Origin: Ramazzottius varieornatus
Lineage: Eukaryota; Animalia; Tardigrada
NCBI GenBank assembly: GCA_001949185.1
Contig: BDGG01000001.1
Location: 7,638,149-7,702,148, forward strand
DNA: 64,000 nt
Reading direction: 5' to 3'
Position 1 is the stretch's first letter. Each line of letters opens with the position of its first letter. A model generated the notes under the pieces. It saw only the letters and a list, made by a program, of their open reading frames with translations, was not told where the DNA came from and did no database searches. The translations under genes were made by a program, and so were the position numbers. Positions 5,624 through 49,452 of this stretch are shown here, one piece after another.

Positions 5624-8600
5624 ATGGAGCATGCGGACGACGATCTAGACCTGCACCAACCCATTGAATGGCAACCGGAAGTCGAAGCCTTCCCCAACTT
5701 TGTCATGCTGGTAGTCTCGAAACTTGGCCAGGAGACTGCAGAATGGAATTATGACGTCCGGCCAGAGGAGAAACGACTGACCATCTACATGCTGAGTTAC
5801 AAACACGACATGGTGGTGGTCGACACTTGTTTGTCTTTGCACTTCCGGTCGGAACCACCTGATGTACCGGTATCCTGTGCGTATTCCCTCACTCCTACAT
5901 TCAGCACCAAAGGACAACAACAGACCTGCTGGCTGCTCTTTGGACGAAACTTCCTGATATCTGTCGCCGAAGTTCCGAGATTGCTCCGACGTTTGGACCA
6001 AGACAGGTTGGAGCGAGACGCAGCTCCGTGTCCGTCAGCTAAGAAGGCAGAAAAGGATGGGGTTGCACACGAGGCGTTTTCTGAGTTCACGAAGCAGGTT
6101 GTCCCCCAATCTGGGCAAGAAACGTCGGCGTGGAAATACGATGTTCAGCAAACGGAAAGAAGGATCACGGTTTTAGGCTGGCTTATACGCACCACTTGGC
6201 TGAGATTGCTGACTGTCTGTCGCTGCACTTCTTCCCCAGTCCGTCAGTTCTATATGTGCACATTTTTCTTCCTCTTGTTAGCGCGGAGGGTAAGCGAATT
6301 GACGCGTCGGTCATTCGAAACGCACTGGGCAAAGACGTTGTGACTACACCGGAAGATGTGCAAAGTGTGCTGCGCCACTTGGACCGGGCAGTTACAGACG
6401 ATGCAGTCGGCGGGCCATTGCGTCGCGAAGAACGAGAGTCTTCTGTAGACAGTCTCGATGAGTGGATAGCGGAGTACGAAGAAGACTCCGAAGAGCGAGG
6501 GATGGCTGTGATAGCAGGAAATGAGCCAGCGAGCAAGAAACGTCGACTGGAAGAAGATGCGAAGGGGTCTTCATTCAAGAAGAAGGGGAAGGCCATAGAA
6601 GAGCTAGTTGTTCCGAAGGAGGAAGAAGAGGCGCTCTTCCAGAAAATGCAATTACAAAACACGCCAAGCTTGAACTTGAACACGATTCCTTCCTTGCCTG
6701 TACATAAGGACTCTGGAGGGACCATTCTGTCGTCGCAGTACTGGAGAAACCAGACAAGGAGTGGAGAGAAGCTGAACTTTACGGTGGACAACGTGAGCAA
6801 CGTGGTCTTGGAGAGCCTACCGACCCTTTCAGAGGACGTACATGAATCCAAAGAGTTGTTGGCTGACAGTGCAACGTATGCTTGGATGCTGCTGGAACAT
6901 CTGCTGGGTGGTAAGAAGGCGATTTCCCGGACTTTCGCCTACACTTCCAGCGGGACTTGTCCCATCGAGAGGAAGGAAATTGTCAGGATTGTAGTCAAAC
7001 TGTGTGACGCCGTTGTCGGTACGTATGGCTAAGATGTTAAATTTGCTGGGTTTCCATCGATTAAATTCAGGCGAGCAAACTCGACCAGACCTGTGTTCCA
7101 ACTGGCGCAGGCCCTCAGTATAATTGGCTGAAAACGCGCGCAACTTCCTGCAGGAAACGCAGCAAGATCGTTTTCAAGTGGCGCACAATTTCCGCCAGTA
7201 ATACTGAATGTGGGTACTTGTGGAAACAATCTTGACGAGTGAGCTCCTATTTGGCGTTCAGGATGTATCGGTTGTACCTTCGCAGAACATATGGAACGGA
7301 CCTTCTCATTGGCGAACAAGGAAGTAATTCGCGCAAAAGCTCTGTCGATGCTTCTTCCGATACTTAACACTCCCTATAACCACATGAGAGGATACAATGG
7401 CAGAGCGCGCTTTCCGTCCGATGAGTCTCTGCGTCAACTTCTGAAAGGGAACTCGTACCCTGAGAGCGGTAAGATACTCAGCAGAACTTGTACTGTATAC
7501 TTCTAAGTCGGACGAACGCTATGACTTATGGGAAGAACCGTGGTAATTGATGTTCTTTAGGTATGGAGCAGATAGCCGATGGTTTCGACTTCTCCTTGGA
7601 CGAAAATATGCTTGAGTTGAGCGGGGAGCTTTATAAAGAAGATGACGAGAAACTGACAGTGGTCAGTCGTTGGGGTCGTTTCGCCATGGATATCGTGGCC
7701 GAGTTGGTTGGTGGCATCGAAGCACTGAATCGAGTCCAGGAAGAAACTGCAGGCAAAATGCTGGCTCTCATAGGGGAAGATGTCTTGGAGGCTATATGGA
7801 GTATGTCTTAACGGGGAAGTACTGAAACACTGTGTTCCTTAGTCCTTACTGACATGGAATCGTTTTCTCATTCTCAAGTGGCGCACAGTTACAGACAATA
7901 ACACCGAAGACGTGCGCCACTTTGGATGATGGACTGGCTTAGTTATTTTGTGCACGTTCCAAACAATCCGCCGATCTTTTCGTTTCAGAGAGAGCTCAGA
8001 GTACGTTTGGTAAGAAGGCCGGTCCCCCTCTGACAGATTTCCGAGTCTTTGTCGGGGACTAGACGCGGCTGAAGAAGAATGGATATGGAGCCAGAGTCAA
8101 CGTCACCAGCAACAAGACGCTGATGGCCTCCGTCCTCTTCCAACCTTCTGCCGCATTAGTATGTGGCATGGATGGCCCACCAGCGGTTCCTGGGTGTAAC
8201 TACTGGACGAGCCCGGCCCCTCACCGAACGCGCCTGTCTCCGAACAGCAACCTCTACATGCAGACTGTCAGGTTCGTTGGTGCTGTTATGCCCGTGCATT
8301 TTCGGGACCTGGGCAAACAGACTTAAGAACATTGTTCACTCCAAGTGGCGCGCGATTTCATCCAAGGACTTCGAGAACATGCGCCACTGAGAAGAGCAAA
8401 CGCAGTCGGCATGTTTGTTGTTCCAAGTGGCGCACGGTATAAACCGATAACACTACGAGTGCGCCGCCCGGAAAAGTCTCTTCTCATCGGTTGATGTCCT
8501 GCTTTCAGCTGCGTGTTTTTTGTAGGTTGGCCGAGTTCCAGCGTTAGCTGGGTCCCGAGCGAGGTAAGAGCGTAAGCTTGTATGCCAACAGGGACTATGC

Positions 8601-9187
8601 ACCTTACCTCAGAGCTCTCTCAGCGTATGCCGTTGGGGGAGATGAATACCTCCTCAAATAACTGTTGGAACGGAGGAAAGGCAAGCCCACTGCAAAACTT
8701 ACGGCCCTCCTAGAGAAAGAACTTATAGCTCTGACCTTGCTGGAAGCCCAAGCGTACTGGCGGAAGCCAGCGCCCGATCGAACACAGCTTCGACCGGGCC
8801 ACGATGTCTACATCAGGACCAAGATACTGGAAAGTATCGCCTCTTACTACGGTCCCGGGTCCAAAGAGGACTGCATCAAGAAGCACAGCTCGGCTTTCAT
8901 GATACATATGTTGGGTGTACCGGAAGTGGCGTTCAAGTTGAAGCATGGGAAACCCTTCTGTTCGGAAACTTCGTTCGCTCTTTGTGATTGAGGATCTGCT
9001 GGCGCTCTGTTTGCACTCGAACGAAGTGTTTCAGTTGGCTTTTTCTATCTCTCCTGAGGGCAGTTTGACATATGCCAATGCCAGAATAAGCCGTTGCAAC
9101 AATGATCGGGAAAATGTCTACGTGGCAACAAGACCTGGACGAAAGGTGGAACTCGACTCGCTGCCTTCAGCTCTTGATCCTGAATAA
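5624..9187 (+). pseudogene. Unknown family copy A (2 N-terminal domains + BEN-like repeats), pseudogene
   Basis: Carries the family motifs WNYDV/WKYDV, SSQYW..AWMLLEHLLGG, GFDF..RFAMDIVAELVGG, CNYWTSPAPHRTRLSPNS and YWRKPAPDRTQLRPGHDVYI. Lesions: frameshift near 6170-6180, in-frame stop QR*LGP near 8546, rearranged junction near 8730 and frameshift near 8965. Confidence 0.85.
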
Positions 9188-9481
9188 CTTGCGCCTATTT
9201 CTTTCAACTACGAAGCAATGGCGTTGTTTCAGATTTCGGTTTCTAGAAGCTTACAGCTTTTTGTGCCTTTTTTGTCGCATTTATTGTGATACCATTTGGT
9301 CCTTTGTGCTTGCTATAACGTCAACTTTGGACTTTGGAGGTCGGCAGACGAAACGTACGTCAGACGATCGTTCTCTCAAGTGGCGCACGTTTCCACTGTA
9401 CTTCAGCGGAAGCGTGCGCCTCTTTGGAAAACAAGCTTGTACGTTCTGTTCGCCGGCCTCCCATTTTAGTCCAAATGTCGG

Positions 9482-12400
9482 CTTTGGTCGTTCATCCAGC
9501 TCCGAAAAATACCAGCGCGTTTCACCCTTGTCGTACTGCTGTAAAAGCCGACTGGAAAAGACTTCGAAACAGACGTACAGCAGTCTCTTGGCAGTCTTCA
9601 GATTGTTGCCTGGGATGGCGTACAGGTGTTCGACATGTTCTGCAAGAGACTCTTAGTGTTGACCTAAACCATGCATAAAGGGGAAAATCTCGACCAGATC
9701 GTTTTTCCCAAGTGACGCATGGCACCAGCCAATAATACCAGGAACGTGCGCCACTTGAGATAACAACGTCGCCGAGTGTGTCTGCCGAGCTCCCGAACAA
9801 GTCGAATAACCAACAAGACCGTACCAAATTTGGCACCACCAGCGCTTCGTCCAGTGCTGCCATTGTCAATCCTTCTTTGGCTTTCCTACGTTGCAGGAGC
9901 CTCTTCATGACGACGTCTTCTCCACCCACTGCATACTGTACCAGCGCTTTCAGGTAAGTAGTGTGCTCTTTACTGCCCGCGCCCGTAACTCTTTTTTTGG
10001 TGCTCCGTTCGGGACCCACCTGACGCTGATACTCGGCCAACCTGAAAAATGGTAGCGTGTTAGATTCCTCGCATCGTCTAAATCTGACAGAATTTCCGAT
10101 CCTCGATCGCTGAAACTTTCTGAAATGTGCCGTTTAGTTTCGCCACGAATACCAGCATGCTATGACTGAATAATGAAGCAACCTGGTCAACCACGAGTGG
10201 GATTTTGTGGCAAAAGGGCTAACCAGCTCGCAAAACATGATCGACAAGATCAGTTATCTAAGTAGCGCACTCTAGCGGTGGTGCTAGTTGAACGCGTGCG
10301 CCACTTCAAAAGCTGATCTTGCCAAATTTGTTCCCCCGAACAAGATAGGTGAATGAGTGGTGAATGTTCATCGACCGCTCTGGACTCACTCTACAGTGGT
10401 TCTACTAAGTGGTTGGTGATAGTTTTCCTCAGTCAGAATTCCTGTACAACATTCAGTGATTGCGAAGAGTATTACAAACCTAGCAGTTAGCATATAAAAG
10501 TCGCTGTTGGGTGCAAGACGCGTTCGATGAGAATCGGGACTTGTCCAGTAGTTGCAGCCAGGTTCCGCTGATGGATCGTCCACTTCAGGAACTAGAACCG
10601 CCGGACCTGGTAAGGTACCAGGAACAGAAGCGAGAACTGTTGCTGACGGGAAGAGGAGCGACGCCATCAGGTTCGTAGTCTGTCCCACCGCGATACCACT
10701 CCAGTTACCTCTAAGGAACATATTCCGAACGTACAGCCGAAATGGCTTGTAGGCTAGATCCCCTTCTGGTCCGAAGGTTTTCTGAGCCCTCTCTAGAAAT
10801 AAAACTGGTCGGTAATCGTTCAGACCAATTAAAGGAAACATGGGAGCTCGGCAATCGCGCACTTTTCCAGCCAAAAACCCTGAAAGCGTGCGCCACTTGC
10901 GCGAACGCGACAAGCTCGTTCTGCCAAGTAGCGCACGCTCTCGACCAGAAACACTGAAAACATGCGCCACTTGAGAAAGCAGTCTTTGTCAATTTGTTTG
11001 TTTAGCTCCCGTATGGGGAAAAAACTTAGCTTACCATATATGGCGTCGAGAAGGTCCTCACCGATCAGGGCCAGCGTATTGCCTTCGATGTGCAGCCTCC
11101 CTTTGTGATGGTATCGACACCTCCAACCAGTTCGGCCACGATGTCCATCCCGAAGCGACCCCATCGCTAGACCACCTTCAACTTGTCTGCTTTCTCCCTG
11201 TAGCCCGCCACCATTAACCGCAACTTCTCTTCGTCCACGTAAAAGTCAAAGCCACGTGTGACCTGCACTTTACCTACGATACATAATTAGTAAGCACTTC
11301 CCCCTCGCTTGTTTAAACCAACGATGTTCGAGGAGCTGGTTACCTTCGTCGGGATACGAGCTTTCTTTGAGGTACTCGCGGAGGAACAGGTCGGAAGGAA
11401 AGCGAAATTTAGCCTGTTTGTATCCCTCCAGGTCTCTGTACCCCACATCAGTCAACGGCTTCATCAACGACAGGACCTCTACTCGCACTTCCTCCGTACC
11501 TTCCACGGAGGAGGATCGCCCCATGTGCTCTAAAAAAACATCACTACATGACACTGATTCACTGAAACGAGATACGATAAATCACCATCGACAGTTACTA
11601 CCATGTGAAACCTAGTACGCCCACAACTGAAGCTCGAGATAAGCTCGAGAAGATTGCTTTTCCGAGCAGCGCACGTTTTCATTCAGTTAAACTGGCAATG
11701 TGCGCCACTTTTGGAAACAATCTTGTCGGCAAACAAACTCGCGCACGTTTTCGCTGTTATCGACTAGAAGCGTGCGGCACTTGGGAGAAACAATGCTGTC
11801 GGACAGGTTTATCGAGCTCCCTTTAACTTCATACCGAGAATTCCATCGCAGAGGTCGACGACAATCTTCACCAGTTTCTTCCTGTCGATGGGACACGTCC
11901 CACTAGTAGTGTAGGTGAAACTTCGGCGTACGGCTTCCTGACCACCCAGCAGATGCTCCAGCAGCATCCAAGCGTACGTTACCCTGTCAGCCAACTGGTC
12001 TTCGAACTCTCCCAGAAGATTAGGCAGGCCTTCCAAGGCTTTTTTATCCACGAAGATGTCAGCTGTGCAATTCAGCTTTTCCCGACTTGCTGCAGGAACA
12101 GTCCAGTACTGCGACGACAGGATGGTCCCTCCACAACCTTCATGTACAGGTAAGGAAGGTCTATCGTCCAGGTTCAGCTTCATTCGTGCTCTTCGCACTC
12201 ATCTCAGCAAATTACATCGTTCTCCACTTCGCCACCGGCATCAACCTGCTTCCTTGTCTTTAGTTTCTTCAGAGCAACTGGTAATTCTTCCTCTTCATCA
12301 ACCAAGCGTCTCTTTGCCGTTGGTTTCATTGGAGGCTTTTCCGGAGAAGCCACTTTAGTTTGGTTGGATCGCCGTACCTGTCGATGCGATTCTACTTCCG

Positions 12401-13312
12401 CTTCGTCCTCTTCTTCGTGCTTCGATGCGCCAAAGTCTGGACCAATTTCTTCTCCACCAGAGTCTTCTTCGTAGCGTGCAGCCCAGTCATCGAGACTATC
12501 CTGAGACTCCACAGACTTGCCCCGCTCTTCGTGGTTCTCTCCAACGATGGTAACTTCCTCGTCCATGTTTCCAGTGTCATACGGATCGTCCAAACTATCA
12601 AGTATCGTCTGGACATCTTCAGCTGACGATACGGTAGATTCACCCAGCACTCTGTTGATGAACGATGGCTGAGCCTTTCTTTACGCCGGAGCTGAAGACG
12701 GGAAGGTATGTAGGTGTGGAAGGTTCAGCTGGGTTGGCAACGAATTGCAGAGACAGACAGTCTGCCATTACGGCAACGTTGTCCTTGTAGCCCAGCTTGA
12801 CATTATGGTCTCTCTTGCTCTTCGATCGTCGTACTTCCACGCCGCTGTCTCTTGTCCAAACCGTGGAACAACCTGCCTTTCAAAGTCCGAAAAGTTATCT
12901 TGAGACGCTTCACTCGAAGCAACAGAGTCTTCTCGGAGGCGATCATTGTCCAACTGATCCAGCAAAGCCTGAACGTCGAGCGACGATGTCAGAGCCCTCT
13001 TGCCAAGAAGGTTCTGGATAAATGGCGAGTCTTTCTTCTGTCCGCCGGAGCTGAAGGTGGGAGTGAGGGAGTAGGTGGAAGGGTCGGAAGGTTGGAAAGT
13101 GAACTGCAGGCAGAGGCAATCGTCCACTGCCGCGACGGCTTCCATCTCGTCCGTGTACTTTAACGTGAAGATGGTCAGCCGCTTCTCCTCCCTCCACACG
13201 TCGTACTTCCATCTCGCCGTCTCCTGTCCCAGTTTGGGACCACCAGCATGACAAAGTCCGGGAAGGCGTCCACTTCCGGTGGCCATTCCGTCAAGTGACT
13301 TGTTTCCTTCAT
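9482..13312 (-). pseudogene. Unknown family copy B, pseudogene truncated at ..DERPKP
   Basis: Same exon series as copy C. A 1-nt deletion relative to C near 13240, further frameshifts near 12825 and 12645, and the last exon breaks off at ~9482. Confidence 0.85.
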
Positions 13313-14364: not shown

Positions 14365-17300
14365 TTATACATGGAGCGCATGATACAAAGTATTTTTTAC
14401 AGGTTGATATTCCTTTCGTTCGGTCTTTCTCCTGAGGTGTTTCTTAGCACGATTCATCCGCACAGTGGCGTTGATCAGACTATCGGAAGGACTAATAGAG
14501 AACATCAACTGGAAGACCTCGTCTGAATGCAGGCAAACCGCCACCAGATCGTCAAAGACGAACATGGAACGGAAGCCATCGTAGAAGGTCTTTCCCTCCC
14601 GCAATTCGTACGCAGTCTCAAGACCACCCAGCATGTGTAGCATCAACGCATTGCTGTACTTCTTGATGTCGCTCTCTCTCGATCCTGGGCCGAAGTAGGA
14701 GGCAATGCTTTTCAATACCTTGGTTGTGATGTAGACATCGTGGCTCGGACGAAGCTGTGTTCGATCGGACGCTGGCTTCCGCCAGTACTCTTGGGCTTCC
14801 AGCAAGGCCACAGCTTCCGGTCTGGGTCGTTCATCCACTTCAGGAAAGTACCAGCGCGTCTCGCCTTTATCGTACAGCTTCAGCAGACTGGTGGAGTAAA
14901 GCTCCACAGAGTCGTACAGTTTCTTCATTGCACTTTTTCTGGTGTTAGCTGGTAACTCGTAAAGAAGTTCAACGTGTTCTACGAACAAAGTGTCGTTAAG
15001 ATTTCCTTGTTACACGTTCGACACAAGTTTAAGAGACTGTAAAGGACACAGTACAGTACGTGCGGTACGAACCAAATAAGGCGACGATCATAGCTTCGTC
15101 GAGAACTGTCACAGTCTTCCCTTCCTTCTTGGCTCTCCTCCGCTGCAGCAGCCTTTTGACAAATACGCCCTCTCCCCCAACCGCGTACGCCACCAGGGCC
15201 TTGAGGTAGCCAGTGTACTCTCGGTTACCGGCACCCTGAATCTGCTTACGCTTGGACCGTTGAGGACCCAGGTAACGCTGATACTCGACCAACCTACACA
15301 ACAAACCAGCTCCACTCAGACTGGATACTAAGACTGGGACTTAGACTGGGTACTAAAGATATCCACTTTTCTATTCCAGTAGCTGGATGCTTTGTAATGA
15401 GTTTTATGATAGTCTGGAAAATTTGGGAGCTCGGCAAACAAGCCCACACAGCTTGTTTATCCAAGCAGCGCACGTTTCCAGTGTTCTCGGCCGGAAACGT
15501 GCGCCACTTGGAAACGATACGGTCGAGTTTGTCTGGCGAGATAGCAGTGAGTCCAGTCTAATGATTGGACTTATTTTCGTTTCTTCGCTAGTGTCGATAA
15601 AGTGTTTTTCTTATTGCTAGTGCAGTACTAAGTACTAACCTGGCTGTTAGCATATAAAAGTCGCTGTTGGGTGAAAGACGCGTTCGATGAGGAGCGGGAC
15701 TTGTCCAGTAGTTGCAGCCAGGTTCCGCTGGTGGATCGTCCACTTCAGGAACTAGCAGCGCCGGTACGGCATTCGAGCCAGAGGAAGCATCGACCATGGA
15801 CGGGAAGAGGATGGAGGCCATCAGCCTTGTGCTTTCTTCCACGTAAACCCTGCCTTTGAGACAGAACATGGCCTGAATATGCCGCCGGAAGATGCTATAG
15901 GCAAACTCTTCTTCCGATCCAAATGTCTTTCGGGCTCTCTCTGAAAAAAACACTAACGGTTAGAAAAGTTGGTGTCATAAAACTTATGGCAGCTCGGCTC
16001 GAAAGATCATTTCTCAAGTGGCGCGCCATTTCAGTGATTAACACTGACAACGTGCGTCACTTGGACAAGCCGGCCCATATCACTTTTACAAGTCGCGCAC
16101 GGTTTCAGCCAACAACAGTGAAACGTGCGCCATTTGGGCAAACAATCTCGTCGGGTTTTACTTGCGGAGCTCCCAAATGCAGAGAAAGTAGGGTTACCGT
16201 ATGTTGCGTCGTGGAGGTCCTCGCCAATCAGAGCCAATGTGCTTCCTTTGATGTGATGTCGGCCTTTGATGATGACGTCGACACCACCAACCATCTCGAC
16301 CACAATATCCATCGCGAAGCGACACCATCGCTGACGTACTGGCAGCCCAATTTCCTGTTCGTTGTAGCGTTCTTCCATTTCGCGAAGTTTCTCTTCGTCC
16401 ACGTAAAAGTCAAAGCCATGTGCAACCTGCACTTTGCCTGGATGTATTACAAGAACAGCCGGTTTACAAAAACGGAAAAAAGGAGCACGCGAGTTTCGTA
16501 CCTTCCGCTGGGTGCGAGCTTTCTTTCAGGTAGTCGCGAAGAAAAATGTCGGAAGGGAACCGCGACCTGCCGTCCGTGTAACTCTTCTGGTCCTTGTACG
16601 TTACACTAGTCAACGGCTTCAACATGGATAAAATTTCGGCTCGTACTTTCTCCGGGTTCGTCAGCGAGAAGGTCCGCTGCATGTGCTCTGTAACATCGAA
16701 CGTTTCACTAACACTGGGATGCTATCGGGAACATACAGGAACTGGGCAAACAAACTCGACCATTATTGGTTTTCCAAGTGGCGCAAACTTGCAGCCAACA
16801 ACAATGGAAACGTGCGCCACTTCGGAAAACGGTCCTGCCGAGCTTTTCAAAGTCGCGCACGCTTCAGTTCGCCAGTTTGGTCATCAGTCTTGTCGAGCGC
16901 TTTGCCGAGCTCTCATATCATAATCATGTACCGATAACGGCATCACAGACGTTGACAACAGACATGGCCAACTCGTTCCTCTCGATCGGACATGTACCAC
17001 TCGTGGTGTAGGCGAAACTTCGAGTTATCGCTTCACAACCACCCAGTAAATGTACCAGCAGCATCCAAGCGTACGTTACACTGTCAGCCAGCGAGTCTTC
17101 GGGCCCATCCCGAAGGTTCGGTAGGCTTTCCATGGCCACACTATAGACGAAGACGTCCATGGTGCAATTGAGCTTTTCCCGACTTGCTCCAGGAACGGTC
17201 CAGTACTGCGATGACAGGATGGTCCCTCCACAACCTTCATGTACAGGTAAGGAAGGGATATCGTCCAGGTTCAACTTCAAGGTACTCGCCGCACACATTT

Positions 17301-18453
17301 GTGCGAACAGGTCGTCTTGATCTCTTTCGTCGCGTGGTTCCGCTACCTTACGTTTCTTCGACACGATGGTACTTTTGGGTTGTCGCGTGACGTCGACTTC
17401 GTTACTTTCTTCGACCGAACGCTTCTTGTCCGTTGTTGTCGTCTGCAGCTCTACGGCAGAGGCTTTAGTCTTTCGTTGGGGCTGACGAAAGAGAGAACTT
17501 GAATCAACTTCCAGTGCGTCATCTTCTTCGTTTTCCGGATCACCGACATAGTATTCGTCTCCGGAATCTTCTTCGAACGGTGCGATCCACTCGTCGAGGT
17601 CGTCGTCTGATTGCAGAGACTCGCCATGTTTTGACAGAGCGTCGCCGTCCATCTTGTCCTGACTGACGATCTTGTCCACATCCATGCTGACATAGCTATC
17701 GTCTTGATGACCCAGAATCGTTTGAGCATCCTCAGCCGACGTCACAGTGAGTTTCCCTAGTATATTTCGGATGTAGGATGCTTCAGCTATCTTCCCGTTG
17801 GAACTGAGAGTAGGAGCGAATGTGTCGGCGGTCAGGTCGACGGGGTTGGAGACCAAGTGCAAAGACAGGCAGTCAGCGACGACAGCCACGTTGTCGCTGT
17901 ATCCCAGCCGGAAAATCGTCAGCATTTTCTTCTCTCTTCGGACGTCGTATTTCCATACGCCAGTCTCTTGTCCAAATTTCGGTACGACCTGCGCCTCGAA
18001 CTTTGAGAAGCTTTCCGATGAAGGAGCGTCGTTCAGTGTGGTCGGATTCTCTGTTTGATGACCGTTGTCCAAATGCGTCAACAGTATCTGAACGTCGGGG
18101 GACGATGTCAGCGTACTCTTACCGAGCACATTCTCGATGAAGAAAGGGTCTTTCTTCTGTCCGCCGGAACTGAAGGTGGGAGTGAGGGAGTAGGTGGAAG
18201 GGTCGGAAGGTTGGAAAGTGAACTGCAGGCAGAGGCAATCGTCCACTGCCGCGACGGCTTCCATCTCGTCCGTGTACTTTAACGTGAAGATGGTCAGCCG
18301 CTTCTCCTCCCTCCACACGTCGTACTTCCATCTCGCCGTCTCTTGTCCCAGTTTGGGAACCACCAGCATGACAAAGTCCGAGAAGACGTCCACTTCCGGT
18401 GGCCGTTCCATCGTTGCGTTGTCACTATCGTCATCGATCTTCATGTCTTCCAT
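14365..18453 (-). CDS. Unknown family copy C, apparently intact 6-exon gene (2 N-terminal domains, acidic/basic linker, 4 BEN-like repeats)
   Basis: Exons ~18453-16932, 16687-16502, ~16440-16197, ~15941-15640, ~15293-15072 and ~14980-14365, all open and with GT-AG boundaries. Paralogous motifs are conserved with copies D and F. Confidence 0.85.
15425..15539. repeat. Intronic fold-back repeat (GGCGCAC hairpin family), copy C intron
   Basis: GGGAGCTCGGCAAAC..CAAGCAGCGCACGTTTCC..GGAAACGTGCGCCACTTGG..GAGTTTGTCTGGCGAG. Confidence 0.85.
16745..16912. repeat. Intronic fold-back repeat, three-half-site version, copy C intron 1
   Basis: GGCAAACAAACTCGAC..AAGTGGCGCA..GTGCGCCACTT..AAGTCGCGCAC..CTTGTCGAG..TTTGCCGAGCTC. 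Confidence 0.85.
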
Positions 18454-19092: not shown

Positions 19093-22000
19093 TCAGGTTA
19101 CGCTAAGAGCCAGATGCAAAGAATCGCCATCTCTCTTTATCCCGACGACCTGCCTTTCCCGACCACCTCTCTTTATCCGACGTGTCTCGTGGTCTTTGTA
19201 ACACTGCATCCTGGCATTGGCATAGATCAAGCTGGCGTTAGGAGTGATAGAGAATAACAAGTGAAATACCTCGTCTGAATGCAGACACACTGCCACCAGA
19301 TCGTCAAAGACAAACAGGGAGCGAAGACCGCCGTAAAATGTCTTCTTATCCCAAAACTCATAGACCGTTCCTGGTCCGCCCAGCATATGCACTAGCAACG
19401 CGAAGTTGTACTTCTTGATGCAATTCTCTCTGGACGTTGGGCCAAAGTAAGAGACGATACTTTGGAGTAGCTTGGTTGTGATGTAGACATCGTGGCCCGG
19501 TCGCAGCTCAGTTCGGTCGGGCGCCGGCTTTCGCCAGTACTCTTGGGCTTCCAGCAAGGCCACAGCTTCTGACTTGGGTCGTTCATCCAGCTCAGGAAAA
19601 TGCCACCGTGTCTGACCTTTGGTGTACAGTTCTAGTTGACGCTTCGCAAAGACTTCTAGACAGTCTCGTAGCTTTTCCGTTGCGCTTTTCCTTTCTGTGG
19701 TTGGTATCTCAAAGAGACGTTCCACGTGCTCTAAGAGGAAACAAGACTGTAACGGGTCAGCGCGGACTGTAAAACTGGGTTCTCCATTCAAAAATTCAAC
19801 AAACCAAAGATGGCAGTTTTCAATGCGTCGTCGAGAAGGGCCACACGTTTTCCTTTCCTCATCGCGTTCTTCTGCTGCAACACTCTTTTCAGGAAGGCTT
19901 CTTCCCCACCAACCGCATATGGTACCAGAGCCTTGAGATAGAGAGCGTACTCGGCACCTGCTCGAACCATCTTTATCTTGGCTCGTTCGGGACCCAAATA
20001 TCTCTGATACTCAACCAGCCTACAAACGCGAAGCTCGCAGGCTTGATGAAGGTTCTTCACTGAATGTAGAACGAAGTAGAACGTTTTTGTGCGCGAGCTT
20101 GGGGAATAAACTCGACATCGCTTCCCCAGGTAGCGCACGTCCTTGGTGTCATTCGCCGGACGCGCGACACTTGGAAAACGATCCTGCCAACTTTGCAGTC
20201 TCAAGTGGCGCGAGCTTCCAACCATTCACGCTAGAAACGTGAGCCACTTGAAAAAACAAACTCGTCGAATTTGTTTATCCAGCTCCGATGTACCAACCTG
20301 GCAGTCTGCATGTAGATATCCCAGTTTGGCGAAAGACGTGTCCGATGAGGAGCGGGTCTTGTCCAGTAGTTACATCCTGCTTCGGCTGGTGCGTCGTCCA
20401 CATCAGGAAGCGGTACTAGACCGGTAGCACCTGAGGCGTCGGCTCGGAAGAGGATAGACGCCATCAGTGGCGCATTCCGGCTAACGTCCACTGCAGTGCC
20501 CCTTCTCTTGGGCGGTCGCAGGTAACCCCAGAGGCTGGCCCGGAAGTCCTTCAGGGTGGGTTTCAATTCCTTACCGAACGTCTTCTGAGCTCTCGCTAAA
20601 GATGAGCTTGAAAACGTTAGATATTACAGCAGACAGGTCAGAACTGATAAGAAAATTTACCCCATATGGCTTCGAAGATATCGTCTCCGATCAGCGCCAG
20701 AATGCTTCCTCGTGATTCCTTCTGGCCTTTATGCAATACTTCCGTGCCTCCAGCTAACTCCGCTGCGATGTCCATGGCGAAGCCTCCCCATCGTTGGAGT
20801 ACTTCCAACTCTTCTGCTCCATCCTTATAGTGCCGTGTTATATTCGCGAGCTGCTTTTCGTCAAGGTAAAGGTCAAAGCCATCAGCAACTTGTACTTTAC
20901 CTAAAAAATGTTTTCGCTATCGGAAAATCGGCCAAAAAGAACGAAGAAAAATCACGTAATTACCTTCTTCTGGATACGAGCTATTATTCAGGTATTCTCG
21001 AAGGAAGAGATCGGAGGGAACACGAGTGCGTTCACCAGCTCTTTGTTCTTTGGAACCCTTGAGATTCTTATAGGGTATGTTAGTTAACGGCTGCAGTAAC
21101 GCCAGAACTTCCGTATGCACAACATCCTTGTTTTCCAACGAAGAAGTTCGCTCCATATGCTCTGAAAAACAATAACGAAAACATTGCGTTACAAAGGTCG
21201 GAACTGAAACCCAGACGTTTCCTTCTATGGGACTGGAGCAAACAAAGCGTACAGTACATGATGGTTTTCCCAAGTCAGACACGCTTTCAGCCAGTAACAC
21301 TAAAGAGGTGCGCCATCTGGGAAAACAGTCAAGCTCAATACCAGGGTTTTTTCAAGTGGCGAACGCTTCCAGCTAATAACACTGAAACCGTGCGCCACTT
21401 AGGAAACGGTCTTGTCGAGCTCGCAAATCCTTCACATACCGAGAACCGCGTCGCACAGGTTGACGACGATCTTGACCAATTCCTTCCTTTCGATCGGGCA
21501 TGTCCCACTGGACGTGTATGTGAAACTCCGAGATATCGCTTTCCAGCCACCCAGCAAATGCTCCAGCAACACCCAAGCATAAGCTACACTCCGGACCAGA
21601 TCTTGGACCGGAAGCGCTATAGGAAACGGAAGCTGTGCTGCGGCAAGACTCTTGATGCTTTTGATCGCTTTCTTGTCCACGAAGACGTCCATGTCGCAGT
21701 TCAGTTTCTGTCGGGCAGCTGCCGCCTTTTGCCAGTACTGCGACGAGAAGATCGTACCACCACATTCGGAGTACGGAGGCGCAGACGGCATATCTTTGAC
21801 ATTCAGCTTCAGCGAACTCTTTAACTGCATCTCAGCGAGGATTTCCTCGTCTACCTCTTCACCGACAACCCCAACAACGAGTCTTCTTTTCTTGGAGGGT
21901 TTCTCAGTGGAGGAAGACTTCAGCAACGGTTCCTCGGCTGGTCGTTTCTTTCTTTTGGCTTTCACTGCTACAACTTCCGGTGAAGTATCTCTGGAAGGCG

Positions 22001-23749: not shown

Positions 23750-26700
23750 TTAGGAAACGTTTAGTGCCAGATGTAACAGATCGTCGTTTTTTGTACTCTT
23801 CGCCGTAGCTCGTCTCGCCAGACGCTTCTGCTGCTTGTTGTAACGGGCTATGCCGGAGTTGGCATAAATGATAAGAGCATTGGGGTTGAGGCAAAACATC
23901 ACCTGGAAAATTTCTTCGGCGTGCGAGCAAACTGCTACCAGATCGTCAAAGTCGAACAAGGGCCGAAGACTTCCCGCCACCTTCAGCAGTTTGCGTGCAG
24001 TTTCCAAGCCACCCAGCATGTGTACTATCAAAGCACAGCTGTACTTCTTTGTGGATTTCTCTGGGGACTGTGGACCGTAGTACGAGGCGATACTTTCCAG
24101 TTGCTTGGTCCTGATGTAGACATCGTGGCCCGGTCGAAGCTGTGTTCGCTCGGGCGCCGGCTTCCGCCAGTATTCTTGCGCTTCCAGCAAGGACAAAACT
24201 TTCGGTTTGGGTCGTTCATCAAACTGGGGAAAGTACCAGCGTAACTCGCGATTGTCGTAGGACTCCAGTTCACTGAGGGAAAACTTTTCCAGAGCGCGGC
24301 ATAGATACTTCATCGCACTAATCCTCTCTGTACCTGTCACCACAAAAAGGCGTTCCAGGTGCTCTGCAAAAATAAAAGTCATGGCAAAAGTAAAAATAGC
24401 CAAAGGTCCACTTTCTCTGCTGACAGTCAAGCGAAGCAAGCTTACCAAAAATAGCCAACATCAGCTGGTCAAGAAGAAAGCCCGCAGGTCGCCGTTGTTG
24501 TGTATCGTGCCTCCGCTGCAGCGCTTTCTTCAGAAAGGCTTCTTCTCCGCCAACCGCATACTGAACTAACGCCTCGAGGTACGCGGCGCAGTCTTTGTCG
24601 TTTCAAGCTTTTTGGCCTCATCGCTTTCCGCGCCAAGATACCGTCGGTACTCTTCTAATCTGAAAGAGAAAAACATCAGCGCTATTCGGAACACAGGTAG
24701 CCGAATTCGACAAGATCATCTGCTCAAGTGGCGCACTCTTGCAGCCAGTAGCACTGAGAGCGTGCGCCACCTGGGAAACAATCTCGTCAAGCTTTTCAAG
24801 GTGACGCACGTTTCCAATGTTATCGGCTGAAAGTGTGCGCGACTTGGATGAAACGACCTTGGCGAGTATATTTGCCGAACTTCCGTTTCTAGTTCGAACA
24901 TCGAGAAAAAGGTGATAAACTAACCTGGAAGTCAGCATGTAGATATCGCTGTTGGGGGAAAGACGTGTTCAATCAGAAGCCGGTTTTGTCCAGTAGTTAT
25001 AGCCAGGTACCGCTGAAGGACCGTCCGCTTCTGGTACAAGAACCAAGAGTATGGAGTTCGATGAGCAGGAAGAACCGTCGTTGGTATTGTCCTTCGCAAC
25101 GGCTCTTTTCTTCTTCTTATCCTCAACGGCGACGAAGAAAGCGGCCGCGAATACCCCTGAACGAAGGTTCGGAAGTCTGTAAAGGCAGGAGTGTCGTCGG
25201 AGCCGAACGACGCCTGAGCTCTCGCTACAAAAGCAAGTAGAAGGTAATACAGTAAATGTATGCAAGATGATGGTGCCGATTGAGGCGTACCCCATACAGC
25301 TTTGAAGAGATCTTCGCCTATCAATTCTAAATGTCGTCTCCGGTTTCCTCCTGGCGTCTGTCGAGAGCTTTGGTGCCCCCAACCAGCTCTGCCACAATGT
25401 CTACAGTGAAGCGACACCATCGCTGCATTACCGTAGACTTTGCCCCAGCTTCTTTGTGAAACTGCTCAATGTCGTCCAGCTTTCCTTCGCCCAGGTAGAA
25501 GTCGTAACCATGAGCGATTTGTATTTTGCCTGAACAGCGAATAAACAGATCTGGTACTTCTTTTAACAACCAAAACATACCAAAACAAGAAGAGAGTTGG
25601 TGATATCCTACCGTCATCGGGATACGAGTTATCTTTCAGCCGATCATGAATGAACTCGTCCGACGGACATCGAGCTTCACCTCTGGAAAGCCCTGCGTCC
25701 TTGAACGGTACGCTGGCTATGGGCTTCAACATCGAAAGTACCTCAGTTCGTACTTCTTCTTTATTCGTCAATGTGAGGGTCCACTCCATGTGCTCTGGAA
25801 AACATACAGCAATGTACCACACAAGTCACGCCGTCATTGTATGTACTCTGTCGAGGATTTCACCTACTGGAAACTGAGCAAGATCGTTTTCGCCAAGTGG
25901 CGCACGGTCTCGGTGTTTATGGCTGAGAAGGTGCGCCATTTGGGACAGCGAACTCCCCAACATTAATTTCTGAAGTGGCGTACGCTCTCAGCCAATAACA
26001 CTAACACATGCGCCCCTGGGCCCGGGAAAACCAACCTTGTTGAGGTTACGGCGAGCTTGAAAGAGATTCCAATTCATTCACATACCAAGAACAGCATCAC
26101 ACAAGTTAAAGACAACCTCCACCAGCTCCTTCCTGGCAATCGGACACGCACCACTCGATGCGTAGGTGAAACTTCGAGAGACGGCCTCTTTACCACCCAG
26201 CAAATGCTCCAGCAGCATCCAAGCGTAGGCTACACTCTGAATGAGTTTCTGCACATAAGCTGGTACAGGAAGCGACAACTGCAACACAGCGAGACTCTGT
26301 AGACTCGTCATCGCATCCTTATCCACGAAGATGTCCATGGTGGTACAATCCAGCTTTTCGCGGGTCCCCTCTGGGTTCCTCCAGTACTGCGACGACAGGA
26401 TGGTACTTCGGAATCGGAATGTAAGGGCAACGAAGGCATGTTTGCTGCTTCCAGTTTCAGCGAACTGCCGCACGCGCCTTTGCGAATAAATGCTCGGCTT
26501 GTTCAACTGTCATAGTACCAAAAACCTTCCGTTTCTTCGGAAGCTTGACGGTCTCAGAGTATCCAGCAGGCCGCTTTGCCTCAGGTGCTCTGTAGGTAGT
26601 TCCGGTCCACTGAGGGCGCAGCCAACCGAAAGACAATTCGAGCTTTCTCCCATCTTCTGACGATATTTCCCCTTCGCTGTCGTTCTCGAGATGTTTGTCG

Positions 26701-27143
26701 AGCGGCGCGGTCCACCCGTTGGCGCTAGCGACATGAACACTGGCTTTCTACGGAAAGCACAATAGTTCTTCCATCGAACTGCCCATTCCGCCGTCCAGAT
26801 GGTTTAATATGGTTTGAATGTCTTCAGGTGTCGTGAGGATGCTTTTGCCCAACATACCCTGAAAGAAAGCCGGTTCGGCCTTATGTTCGCCGGAGCTGTA
26901 GGAAGGAAGGAAGAGGTCTAAGGGTGGATCGGCAGGGTTGGAGAAGAAACGCAAGCCTAGGCAGTCTGCGACGGTCACCATATTGTCCTTGTATTGCAGT
27001 CTGAAGATTGACATCTGCTTCTCTTCTTCGTTGACATCGTATGTCCATCTTGTGTTCGCGGTCTGCCGTGTGAATGTCGGTACGATACGCTTGACAAACT
27101 GCGAGAAGGGGTCCACTTCCGGTTGGCATTCCTGACAACCCAT
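23750..27143 (-). pseudogene. Unknown family copy E, pseudogene
   Basis: Family motifs present throughout. Exon 1 is broken by a stop and frameshifts (26748; ~26400-26510). Exon 4 has a frameshift and a CGA>TGA stop at YNYWTKPASD* (24969-24971). The last exon is still open. Confidence 0.8.
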
Positions 27144-27645: not shown

Positions 27646-30600
27646 ATGGAGCGTATCAACAACAAACGTCGCCACGACCACGATGCTTTCGCTGACTTTG
27701 TTACGTTGGTCGTCCCGAAAGTCGGACTAGAAAGAGCGAAATGGAAATACGACATCCGGAGTGAGCAGCGGAAACTGACCATCTTCAGACTGAAATACAA
27801 CGAAGACGACGTCGCCACTGTGGCTGACTGCCTGTCCCTGCAGTTCCAGTCTGTGGCCTCCGACTCCTTCGACTACTCGCTCAACCCCAGCTTCAGCTCT
27901 GGCGGACAGAAGAAAGACCCGTCGTATATCGAAGGTCTATTAGGCAAGCGGCACTTGTCGTCGTTCGTCGATATTCAGAACCTGTTGAGTTATTTGGAAG
28001 CATTAGACGCTCTTCCGGATAACAACGAAGACGTTGGTTCGTTGGAATTTGATGAGCCGACGTATCCGCTGTTCGAACGTAAGAGAAGTTTCAGTAGCTC
28101 CATCCATTCAGTGGAAAACGCAGAAGGACAAGACTCGGAAGGGTCGTACTATGAACCGAAGAAGCGGGGCAAGAAATCGCAGCGGAAGATTGAGGATGAC
28201 ATCGATGTTGATTCTCCTCCGATTCCGAAGAAGAAAACAGCAGCCACAGGTCAGCCGAAGAAAGATGAGAAAGGGGTTGGAGAAGAGGCCATTACACCAG
28301 TGAAACCTAGAGAGAGAAAGTCTCGACCAGCGACTGCGGAGAAGAAGAAGGTTGGGAGACCGAGGAAGGAAATCAAAGAGGACGAACTGAAACTCTTATC
28401 GAAAGTCTCGCAGTCCTTTGGAGTCGGAGTAACTCCAGCACCCATCATGGCAAGAGAAAAGGAGCTTCGAACTTTAGAAAAGAAGGGGAAAGGACCTGGT
28501 CGGCCAACAAAAGAAGAACAGCTTCTGAAGAAGAAGGCTGCTGAAGAACTTGTTGAGAAAGCGCAGTCAGGTTTCCCTGCGTTGCCTGCTCATCCATCTT
28601 CTGGTGGGACCATCTTCTCCTCGCAGTACTGGAACACTCCGGCGCCTTCTCGGGAGAAGCTGAACTGTGCCATGGGTATCCATGTCGATAAAGACACGAT
28701 AAAGAATCTTCCGAATGTAGCAGACGCACCTGTTGAAGAACAGCTGGCGCAGAGTGTCAAGTATGGTTGGATGCTGCTGGAGCACCTGCTGGGTGGTAGT
28801 GAAGCCATTTGTCGAAGCTTTGCCTATACTTCCAGCGGTACTTCCCCGATTGAGAAATGGGAGTTGACAACGACCGTCGACAAACTCCTTGACGGGATAA
28901 TGGGTGAGGAAAAATTTCGGTGATATTGAAACAGAAGTTTTGTAAAAAGCAAGCCAAAATGGAGAATCGAGCTCCAGTCGTCTGATGGTTTTCCCTGTGT
29001 AGTAGATTGAATTTGAAGCCCAACGGTTCGATTCCCCCTATCGATTCACTTCTGCAAAAAAGAGTACTTAATTGTTTTCTCAGTGAAGGCTGACGGGCTT
29101 TTGGAAATCCTTTGTCTTTTCAGAGCATATGCGACATTCGTTTTCACTGGAAACAACGGATGAAGTACGTAAAGGCATCATGGTGATCCTCCGACCAAAG
29201 ATGGAGATGAAGTACTCGGACCAAAGGGGTTTCAGGAAGAGGAACCAGCCGAAAGACCTTGCACCTACTCGACAACCCTCGGACATCTTTCTCCTTACTC
29301 ACCTCGAAGGATGCTCCTACCCGAAGCCTGGCAAGGTTCAAGTCGCTCATGGTTTCGACTTCTACATCGACGAGGTTAAGCTAAAGGAAATCAAGGACCA
29401 GTTTAAAGACAAGGAAGAACCTGAGAAAAGACGCTATGGCCGATTTGGTATGCACCTCGTGGCGGAGTTGGTTGGTGGTTTCGACGTCTACTTGAAAGGT
29501 GCGAAACAGGTCGGTGAGGGCCTTGGATCGTTGGCGCTGATCGGAGACGATATCTTCGAAGCCATTTACCGTAAGTCAAACAGACGTTCGTAAGGGTTTG
29601 TGAGAGAACGGCGCGAATCGCCGGCGGGCTGCTCATGAACCTGCATATACTAACTATGGAACTTGTCATGGTACACGAGTACGCAGGTGTGTGAAATCCT
29701 GGTTTTTATGATTTATTTTTGGCAGTGAGGACCCGGAAGACATTCGGTGTGGAAGACACCTTAACAATGTCTCAGTTCCGTGGCTTCATTCGAGGATATC
29801 TGGAACGGAGAAAAGAAATCAAGGTGAACGAAGATACTGGCCTGATGGCGTCCGTTCTATTCCGTCCTATTCCTTCCACTTCTAAGTGGCCTCCAGTTGG
29901 CTCGATTGGTCCTCGAGACCCACCGGCAGTACCCGGTTGTAATTACTGGATTAGTCCAGGCCCTCATCGGACACGTCTTGCCCCCAGTAGCGAATTCTAC
30001 GTGGACACGACCAGGTCTGTAACTCGGTTTGTGGAATAAATCATCGAGTCATATTGATCGGTTGGACTTTAGGTTGGCCGAGTATCAGCGCTACTTGGGT
30101 CCTGAATGCGGGAAGACAACCAAAGGCCAGCACGGTAAAGACTGGGCGACCTACCTGAAAGTGCTCTTGCAGTATGCAGCTGGTGGAGAAGAGCAGTTCT
30201 TGAAGAGACTACTGGAAAGGAGGAAAGCCAAGCAGGAAGGACAAGTTACGGCAGTACTCGACGACGCTTTGGTACTAGCCATCTTTGGTAAGGACCTACT
30301 TTTATCATAATTCACGATTGTTGACACGAATATTTGTTGCTGACGTAAGCAAGTACAGTCGACAAGAATGTTTTCCAAGTGGCGCCCATTTCCAGTGTAA
30401 CTGGTTGGAACTCGCCTGGAAGCGTGAGCCACTTGGGAAAGCAGTCTCATTTGGCGCACCCCTTCACCTTTGTAAACATGCGCCACTTTGTACAACGAAG
30501 TTGTCGAGGTTGCCCAACAAGCTTTTGTACAAATGACAAATTTGTACAAATCTCAGAGCATGTGACGACCCTCTTCAAGGCCCCGAAGAACAAGCAACAT

Positions 30601-41127: not shown

Positions 41128-49452
<8,325 letters not shown>

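Follow-up and report, generated by a model that had tools for sequence, protein, structure and literature searches.

Four tandem units with a predicted, divergent BEN fold in RvY_02741, a protein of a eutardigrade family from Ramazzottius varieornatus

The window analysed here is a 64,000-nucleotide stretch of the Ramazzottius varieornatus genome (contig BDGG01000001.1, positions 7,638,149 to 7,702,148, forward strand). It contains the gene RvY_02741 (protein P0022, here also copy C), publicly annotated as 'hypothetical protein' only. Residues 414-1027 of its product were found to consist of four homologous tandem units (R1 to R4) of about 150 amino acids (aa) each, and structure prediction supports their assignment as highly divergent BEN domains that are invisible to sequence models. 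In the reading preferred here, RvY_02741 belongs to a family that the present searches located in eutardigrades only, and combines one or two RWD/UBC-like N-terminal domains, a long disordered charged linker and four divergent BEN domains, of which R4 would bind DNA, the array having arisen by exon-module duplication. A probability of about two in three is assigned to this reading as a whole.

RvY_02741 lies on the minus strand at 14365-18453 of the window and comprises six exons coding for 1027 aa:

14365..18453, minus strand: copy C, RvY_02741 (P0022), whole gene; defined by splice sites, identity to the public protein and RNA-contig joints
18453-16932, 16687-16502, 16437-16198, 15940-15640, 15293-15073, 14978-14365, minus strand: exons of copy C

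Introns 1 to 5 measure 244, 64, 257, 346 and 94 nucleotides (nt) and have GT-AG ends in five of five cases. The spliced exon model was identical, letter for letter, to the public protein. All five splice joints (14978|15073, 15293|15640, 15940|16198, 16437|16502 and 16687|16932) were present in assembled RNA contigs, with CT..AC on the plus strand corresponding to GT..AG on the gene strand. The spliced contigs came from four runs of four studies, which were classed as RNA by an automated guess and held about 0.7-0.78 of the sampled words, near the exon share of the stretch. Given the five joints and the exact protein match, the gene is real, expressed and correctly modelled; RvY_02741 is a transcribed and spliced gene of R. 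varieornatus.

The four units are located as follows:

aa 414-560, window 16530..17214, minus strand: R1; predicted strand-strand-five helices; hhalign expectation value (E) 2.7e-9 to R3 and 7.7e-10 to R4
aa 561-722, window 15723..16529, minus strand: R2; most divergent unit, without the YW motif
aa 723-884, window 14797..15722, minus strand: R3; secondary-structure pattern as in the other units; hhalign E 5.8e-11 to R4
aa 885-1027, window 14368..14796, minus strand: R4; intron-free, best conserved unit, with BEN structural matches

A preliminary description of the stretch, made from its letters alone, had quoted four strings as a hidden four-fold internal repeat. All four were recovered once the minus-strand gene 18453..14365 had been spliced and translated, and the repeat itself was borne out. 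For pairwise hhalign comparison, unit profiles were extracted from the aligned sequences of five full-length paralogues. Every one of the six unit pairs aligned significantly and in one register, the pairs involving R2 with E 2.4e-7 (R2-R3), 9.1e-6 (R2-R4) and 5.3e-4 (R1-R2). Real pairs scored 29-68, compared with at most 26 for column-shuffled templates (20 per pair) and 18.6 for reversed templates. When an R1-core profile from six copies was compared with an exon-6/R4 profile from four copies, hhalign gave a probability of 95% (E 4.6e-8). An exon-3 profile (R2) matched R4 (E 3e-3) and R1 (E 2e-3) weakly and in register. The exon-5 profile alone gave no significant match to R4 (E 0.14); the signal of R3 lies mostly in exon 4, and the joined unit was needed for detection. 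Judged from its sequence, R2 is the most eroded copy, with the YW motif lost. A rough consensus, built on twelve units of three species, is YW..P..R..L....D.Y.....L.......GP......Y...L..H.LGG...(about 20)...A..EH...F.

For fold assignment, exon 6 (tail of R3 plus R4) was modelled with AlphaFold2 from a 17-row alignment (mean predicted local distance difference test score 85.8, predicted template modelling score 0.74). In this model, R4 is formed by strands 72-74 and 82-84 and helices 85-95, 104-115, 119-127, 141-155 and 163-189, the last helix comprising 27 residues. The full-length model repeats the pattern strand-strand-helix 1-5 four times, once each in R1, R2, R3 and R4. Two strands and five helices, with helix 5 entering the major groove, likewise make up the BEN domains of NACC1 and BANP (PMC11472053), and the predicted topology of R4 equals the one described there. 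Foldseek with the exon-6 model against the PDB placed NACC1, NAC1 and Insensitive BEN chains at ranks 1-5, with weak E-values (0.5-1.4) and probabilities up to 0.94. A search independent of Foldseek, against 48,161 PDB representatives, returned NACC1 (7.9), BANP (7.7), Bsg25A (7.2), BEND3-BD1 (6.7) and BEND6 (5.2) at ranks 1-5. These are five of five BEN cluster representatives; rank 6 scored 4.3. The matches extend over the N-terminal strands as well as the helices, with BEN-chain coverage of 85-90%. Among the viral structures of BFVD, the best match was a bracovirus BEN-domain protein (probability 0.97). With the 1027-aa model, the N-terminal domain filled a first structure search and no BEN row appeared, whereas an exhaustive structure search gave BEN rows, in which R2 was matched independently by BANP and Bsg25A BEN. 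Neither a non-BEN fold nor a failure of the segments to align with each other was thus encountered.

Several results weigh against this assignment. The Pfam BEN model (PF10523, gathering score 23.2 bits, not reached by any family member scanned) matched none of the six copy C exons at E<=10 and, at E<=1, none of the family proteins P0022, P0001, P0023, P0024, P0025, P0004, P0005, P0007, P0011, P0020, P0002 and P0018. A six-frame PF10523 scan of the whole genome, which reads exon by exon so that intron-split domains can escape, yielded one weak match on another contig and none in the window. HMMER searches of the unit profiles against PDB sequences retrieved no BEN chain (first 0 matches), and ESM Atlas returned no usable match for aa 880-1027. 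The per-unit BEN structural matches cover R4 and R2, and the predicted structures were computed from shallow alignments of 17-19 rows. The units were described beforehand as divergent BEN domains; the predicted fold and its structural neighbours favour that description. As no PF10523 match was obtained in the family, homology to BEN rests on predicted structure.

Pfam matches to WWE_1, DUF4529 and TRI4_N, obtained with the exons and the twelve family proteins, were dismissed as noise. HMMER/PDB matches to polyubiquitin and MARK2 were spurious and caused by an LRGG..F.KT-like stretch. The lone genomic PF10523 signal (17.7 bits, E 0.18, below cut-off) was located at 2213618-2213758 on the minus strand of contig C4 (locus L001, G000:C4:2212118-2215258); a canonical BEN gene may have an exon there.

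Compared with the BEN domains of NACC1, BANP, Insensitive, Bsg25A/Elba1 and BEND6, the tardigrade unit shows no detectable sequence similarity, and identity within the structural alignments is 8-19%. It has motifs of its own (YW..P..R..L before strand 2 and H.LGG at the end of helix 2) and measures about 150 aa including a linker helix, and its DNA binding is predicted only. The likeness to BEN might be convergent, the unit being a helical domain born in tardigrades, unrelated to BEN and possibly with a role outside the nucleus. This is considered very unlikely. All five BEN representatives rank ahead of every other fold among the 48,161, with a gap before rank 6; the match spans both N-terminal strands and the helices; and R2 and R4, whose mutual similarity is low, each match BEN separately. 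Lack of a sequence signal is also known from a bona fide case. In Caenorhabditis elegans LIN-14, the BEN domain was recognised from structure alone, and mutation of helix-5 arginines then proved that it binds DNA (PMC10080584). Like the nuclear factors LIN-14 and SEL-7, the tardigrade proteins form a lineage-restricted family without Pfam BEN signal, in which BEN is seen only via predicted structure (PMC10080584). Unlike RvY_02741, which has four domains known from sequence and models, LIN-14 has a single one with proof by mutagenesis. Homology to BEN, rather than convergence, is the probable reading.

For reconstruction of the origin of the array, intron positions were mapped onto the units:

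16688-16931, minus strand: intron 1, 244 nt; in R1, phase 1, helix 4
16438-16501, minus strand: intron 2; in R2, phase 1, at strand 1
15941-16197, minus strand: intron 3; in R2, phase 1, helix 4
15294-15639, minus strand: intron 4; in R3, phase 2, start of helix 1
14979-15072, minus strand: intron 5; in R3, phase 1, helix 4

A phase-1 intron at one spot in R1, R2 and R3 had been noticed previously, and introns 1, 3 and 5 were confirmed to sit at matching columns of the three aligned units. They split codons 508, 650 and 824, in each case one codon before the H/R of EH/ER and in the middle of helix 4; R4 has no such intron. Introns 2 and 4 of copy C occupy non-homologous positions. Introns 1, 3 and 5 are retained in copies D and F, two further intact genes of the cluster. 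In copy F (plus strand, window 29124-29570), exons 2 and 3 are fused; as the other four introns are kept, intron 2 was lost within the cluster.

The case for tandem duplication of an exon unit, already proposed in the preliminary description, is strengthened by a distant subfamily on contig C3 (about 1.52-1.54 Mb). RvY_06952 (P0007), about 20% identical to copy C, carries a phase-1 intron at exactly the helix-4 position in four of four units, and RvY_06954 carries it in the one unit whose junction was read. Both resemble copy C in having a BEN-like unit (20-23% identity), up to four times per protein, and the phase-1 intron one codon before the helix-4 histidine. They differ from it by a cleaner architecture, a longer and different N-terminal region and the YW motif in all four units. 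The introns between the units of RvY_06952 are phase 1 as well, so that each unit consists of two symmetric 1-1 exons. Since the helix-4 intron is common to the units of copy C and RvY_06952, it is older than both the divergence of the subfamilies and the amplification of the units. This pattern is a prediction of exon-module duplication and supports it: the array would have been built by tandem duplication of an exon module that already bore the phase-1 intron in helix 4. The recurrence of a phase-1 intron unit by unit documents with unusual clarity the assembly of a multi-domain array from an exon module.

For candidate functions, the remaining parts of the protein were considered together with the last helix of R4:

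aa 21-135, window 18049..18393, minus strand: N-terminal domain 1; putative alpha/beta fold of RWD/UBC-like type
aa 366-370, window 17344..17358, minus strand: KKRKV motif, within a disordered acidic/basic linker (aa 195-373)
aa 987-1014, window 14407..14490, minus strand: R4 helix 5, with 9 lysine or arginine (K/R) versus 3 aspartate or glutamate residues

A second, poorly modelled copy of the N-terminal domain lies at about aa 147-231. In one contig, from run X1 alone, 17279 was joined to 18148, with 868 nt skipped and non-canonical AG..GG ends; the joint is more probably a jump of the assembly from one copy of the N-terminal domain to the other than an intron. KKRKV conforms to the simian virus 40-type consensus and is a candidate nuclear localisation signal. 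The core of R4 (strand 1 to helix 4) is 68% identical among five paralogues and is the best conserved segment of the whole protein. Helix 5 of R4 (28 residues in the full-length model) is among the least conserved segments at 26% identity, yet always basic (5-10 K/R); helix 5 of R1-R3 contains only 2-5 K/R. Three basic residues of exon 6 do not vary: K105 and K106, where helix 2 starts, and R136, in the helix 3-4 loop. In BANP and NACC1, helix 2 and the helix 3-4 loop contact the DNA backbone (PMC11472053). By comparison with BEN-DNA structures (PMC11472053, PMC8887127), R4 helix 5 is a candidate DNA-recognition helix.

The closest architectural parallel is BEND3, the human quad-BEN repressor, in which only the fourth BEN domain binds DNA, via a basic C-terminal segment, while BD1 binds a protein partner, PICH (PMC8887127). 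Both proteins have four tandem BEN-fold domains in the C-terminal two thirds and a basic C-terminal helix in the last domain and not in earlier ones, paralleling the BD4-DNA and BD1-PICH interactions (PMC8887127), and BEND3 BD1 (5jno) is among the top structural matches. Because of its conserved core, basic helix 5 and invariant K/R residues, and with BEND3 BD4 as precedent, R4 is proposed as the DNA-reading module. By analogy with BEND3, its helix 5 would be inserted into the major groove; R1-R3, with shorter and less basic last helices, may serve as protein-interaction or scaffolding modules, and the N-terminal domain may contribute partner binding or oligomerisation. Nuclear location, DNA binding and this division of labour among the units are inferences.

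The same comparison also suits an arrangement in which the units are true BEN folds and none binds DNA. The protein would then be a chromatin or other adaptor, its four units would make protein contacts, and the basic C-terminal helix would be only a localisation signal or a tail for RNA or acidic partners. BEND3 BD1, which has the BEN fold, binds the tetratricopeptide repeat protein PICH and not DNA (PMC8887127); identity of just 26% in R4 helix 5 would be expected of an unconstrained tail, helix 5 of R1-R3 is poor in basic residues, and the RWD-like domain is a protein-interaction fold. However, R4 helix 5 is strongly basic in five of five paralogues, and the conserved K105/K106 and R136 fall in the very elements that contact the DNA backbone in BANP and NACC1 (PMC11472053). 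Relatives moreover carry a fused Myb/SANT-like domain or, with a score under the Pfam cut-off, C2H2-type fingers. The adaptor alternative is regarded as unlikely, and a DNA-reading R4 is preferred.

Regarding these fusions, RvY_10178-2 (P0024) has an added N-terminal Myb/SANT-like DNA-binding domain at aa 161-218 (PF12776, 28.6 bits versus a cut-off of 23.6). Paramacrobiotus metropolitanus LOC129594334 (P0020) combines the N-terminal domain with one BEN-like unit and a pair of C2H2-type fingers (aa 424-488; zf-C2H2_aberr, E 2e-4, 21.9 bits, below the cut-off of 27). Judging by domain content, the Myb/SANT and sub-threshold C2H2-type fusions fit a DNA or chromatin role.

Copy C is one of six tandem paralogues at 5.6-31.2 kb of the window. 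Three of them are intact, namely C, D (RvY_02742, P0001) and F (RvY_02748, P0023). The other three, to judge by their reading frames, look like decaying copies:

5636-9184, plus strand: copy A; in-frame stops in exons 4 and 5, R3 tail deleted, frameshift in R4
9449-13288, minus strand: copy B; stop in exon 3, R4 missing
23753-27122, minus strand: copy E; stops in exons 4 and 5

At about 50% identity, the paralogues are presumably saturated at synonymous sites. Two unlinked full-length paralogues were identified (RvY_10178-2, P0024, and RvY_07457, P0025), and when the genome was scanned in six frames with an exon-6 profile, eight contigs together yielded at least 41 matches. The divergent subfamily, with RvY_06952, RvY_06954 and additional units, forms a second tandem cluster at G000:C3:1519000-1538999 (L002/L003); it has a regular two exons per unit, and every intron is phase 1.

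For taxonomic distribution, an exhaustive HMMER profile search of 1.84 billion cluster representatives was used. It retrieved 21 proteins, the named matches being from R. varieornatus, Hypsibius exemplaris and Paramacrobiotus metropolitanus only and the rest from ENA/Logan assemblies. The Hypsibius exemplaris relatives include BV898_04679 and BV898_11576. P0015 (1556 aa) resembles a repetitive bacterial protein and was discarded as a false positive. Among the 21 matches, no sequence relationship to BEND3 or any other metazoan quad-BEN protein was found. In the searches made here, the family thus appears in eutardigrades only, in three genera. Beyond lacking a sequence relationship to BEND3, RvY_02741 differs from it in its RWD-like N-terminal domains and its partly decayed tandem cluster, which are not BEND3 features. 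With no relative found outside tardigrades and no sequence relationship to BEND3, the four-fold array was probably built independently. Literature searches turned up neither a paper that names these genes nor any account of BEN proteins in tardigrades.

Polydnaviruses, poxviruses and some transposons commonly carry BEN domains. The cluster might accordingly belong to a selfish or virus-derived element instead of encoding host regulators; the bracovirus protein as best BFVD match, the birth and death of copies (three of six with stops or truncations), the at least 41 matches scattered over eight contigs and the interspersed hairpin repeats in the introns of the cluster would agree with this. 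Against such an origin, the genes hold several conserved spliceosomal introns, and four independent studies show them in spliced, expressed form. Relatives with conserved architecture occur in three tardigrade genera, the surroundings of the copies showed no transposase, integrase or terminal repeats, and the hairpin repeat occurs window-wide and is not confined to the cluster. A selfish origin is considered extremely improbable.

The predicted fold points to a tardigrade-restricted, sequence-cryptic family whose members probably regulate genes or chromatin. The family is not a new kind of system: precedents exist for the BEN fold, for quad-BEN proteins and for detection from structure alone. 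Its description provides a sizeable 'hypothetical' tardigrade family with a predicted fold and a testable function, and tardigrade genomes hold many such lineage-specific genes. It also carries to a second phylum the lesson of LIN-14 that BEN-type factors can be invisible to sequence models. Pfam BEN finds almost nothing in the genome, so the family may be a large part of the BEN-type complement. On a speculative and doubtful further reading, the family would comprise tardigrade-specific, fast-evolving, sequence-specific DNA binders with a rigid BEN scaffold and a hypervariable basic recognition helix, encoded by genes born and lost in tandem clusters. It would then be a BEN-based counterpart of KRAB zinc-finger arrays, acting for example in silencing of mobile elements or in lineage-specific chromatin control, and would also make up most of the tardigrade BEN-type repertoire, which all annotation based on sequence would so far have missed.

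The hairpin repeat has the arm AAGTGGCGCACGTTTCC, often in inverted pairs about 30 nt apart, and gave 42 matches in the window versus 0.18 expected. Examples are:

15463-15509, 16046-16135, 16806-16866, 9378-9424, 20203-20249, 21354-21400 and 46619-46665: hairpin repeat

An Rfam scan of the window gave no match, and Rfam holds no family for the repeat, which looks like a miniature inverted-repeat transposable element-type sequence. Within the cluster it occupies introns 1, 3 and 4 of copy C as well as the long introns of the other copies. Some RNA contigs derived from elsewhere terminate in the repeat, with loose ends at 15421-15540, 16039 and 16792-16830.
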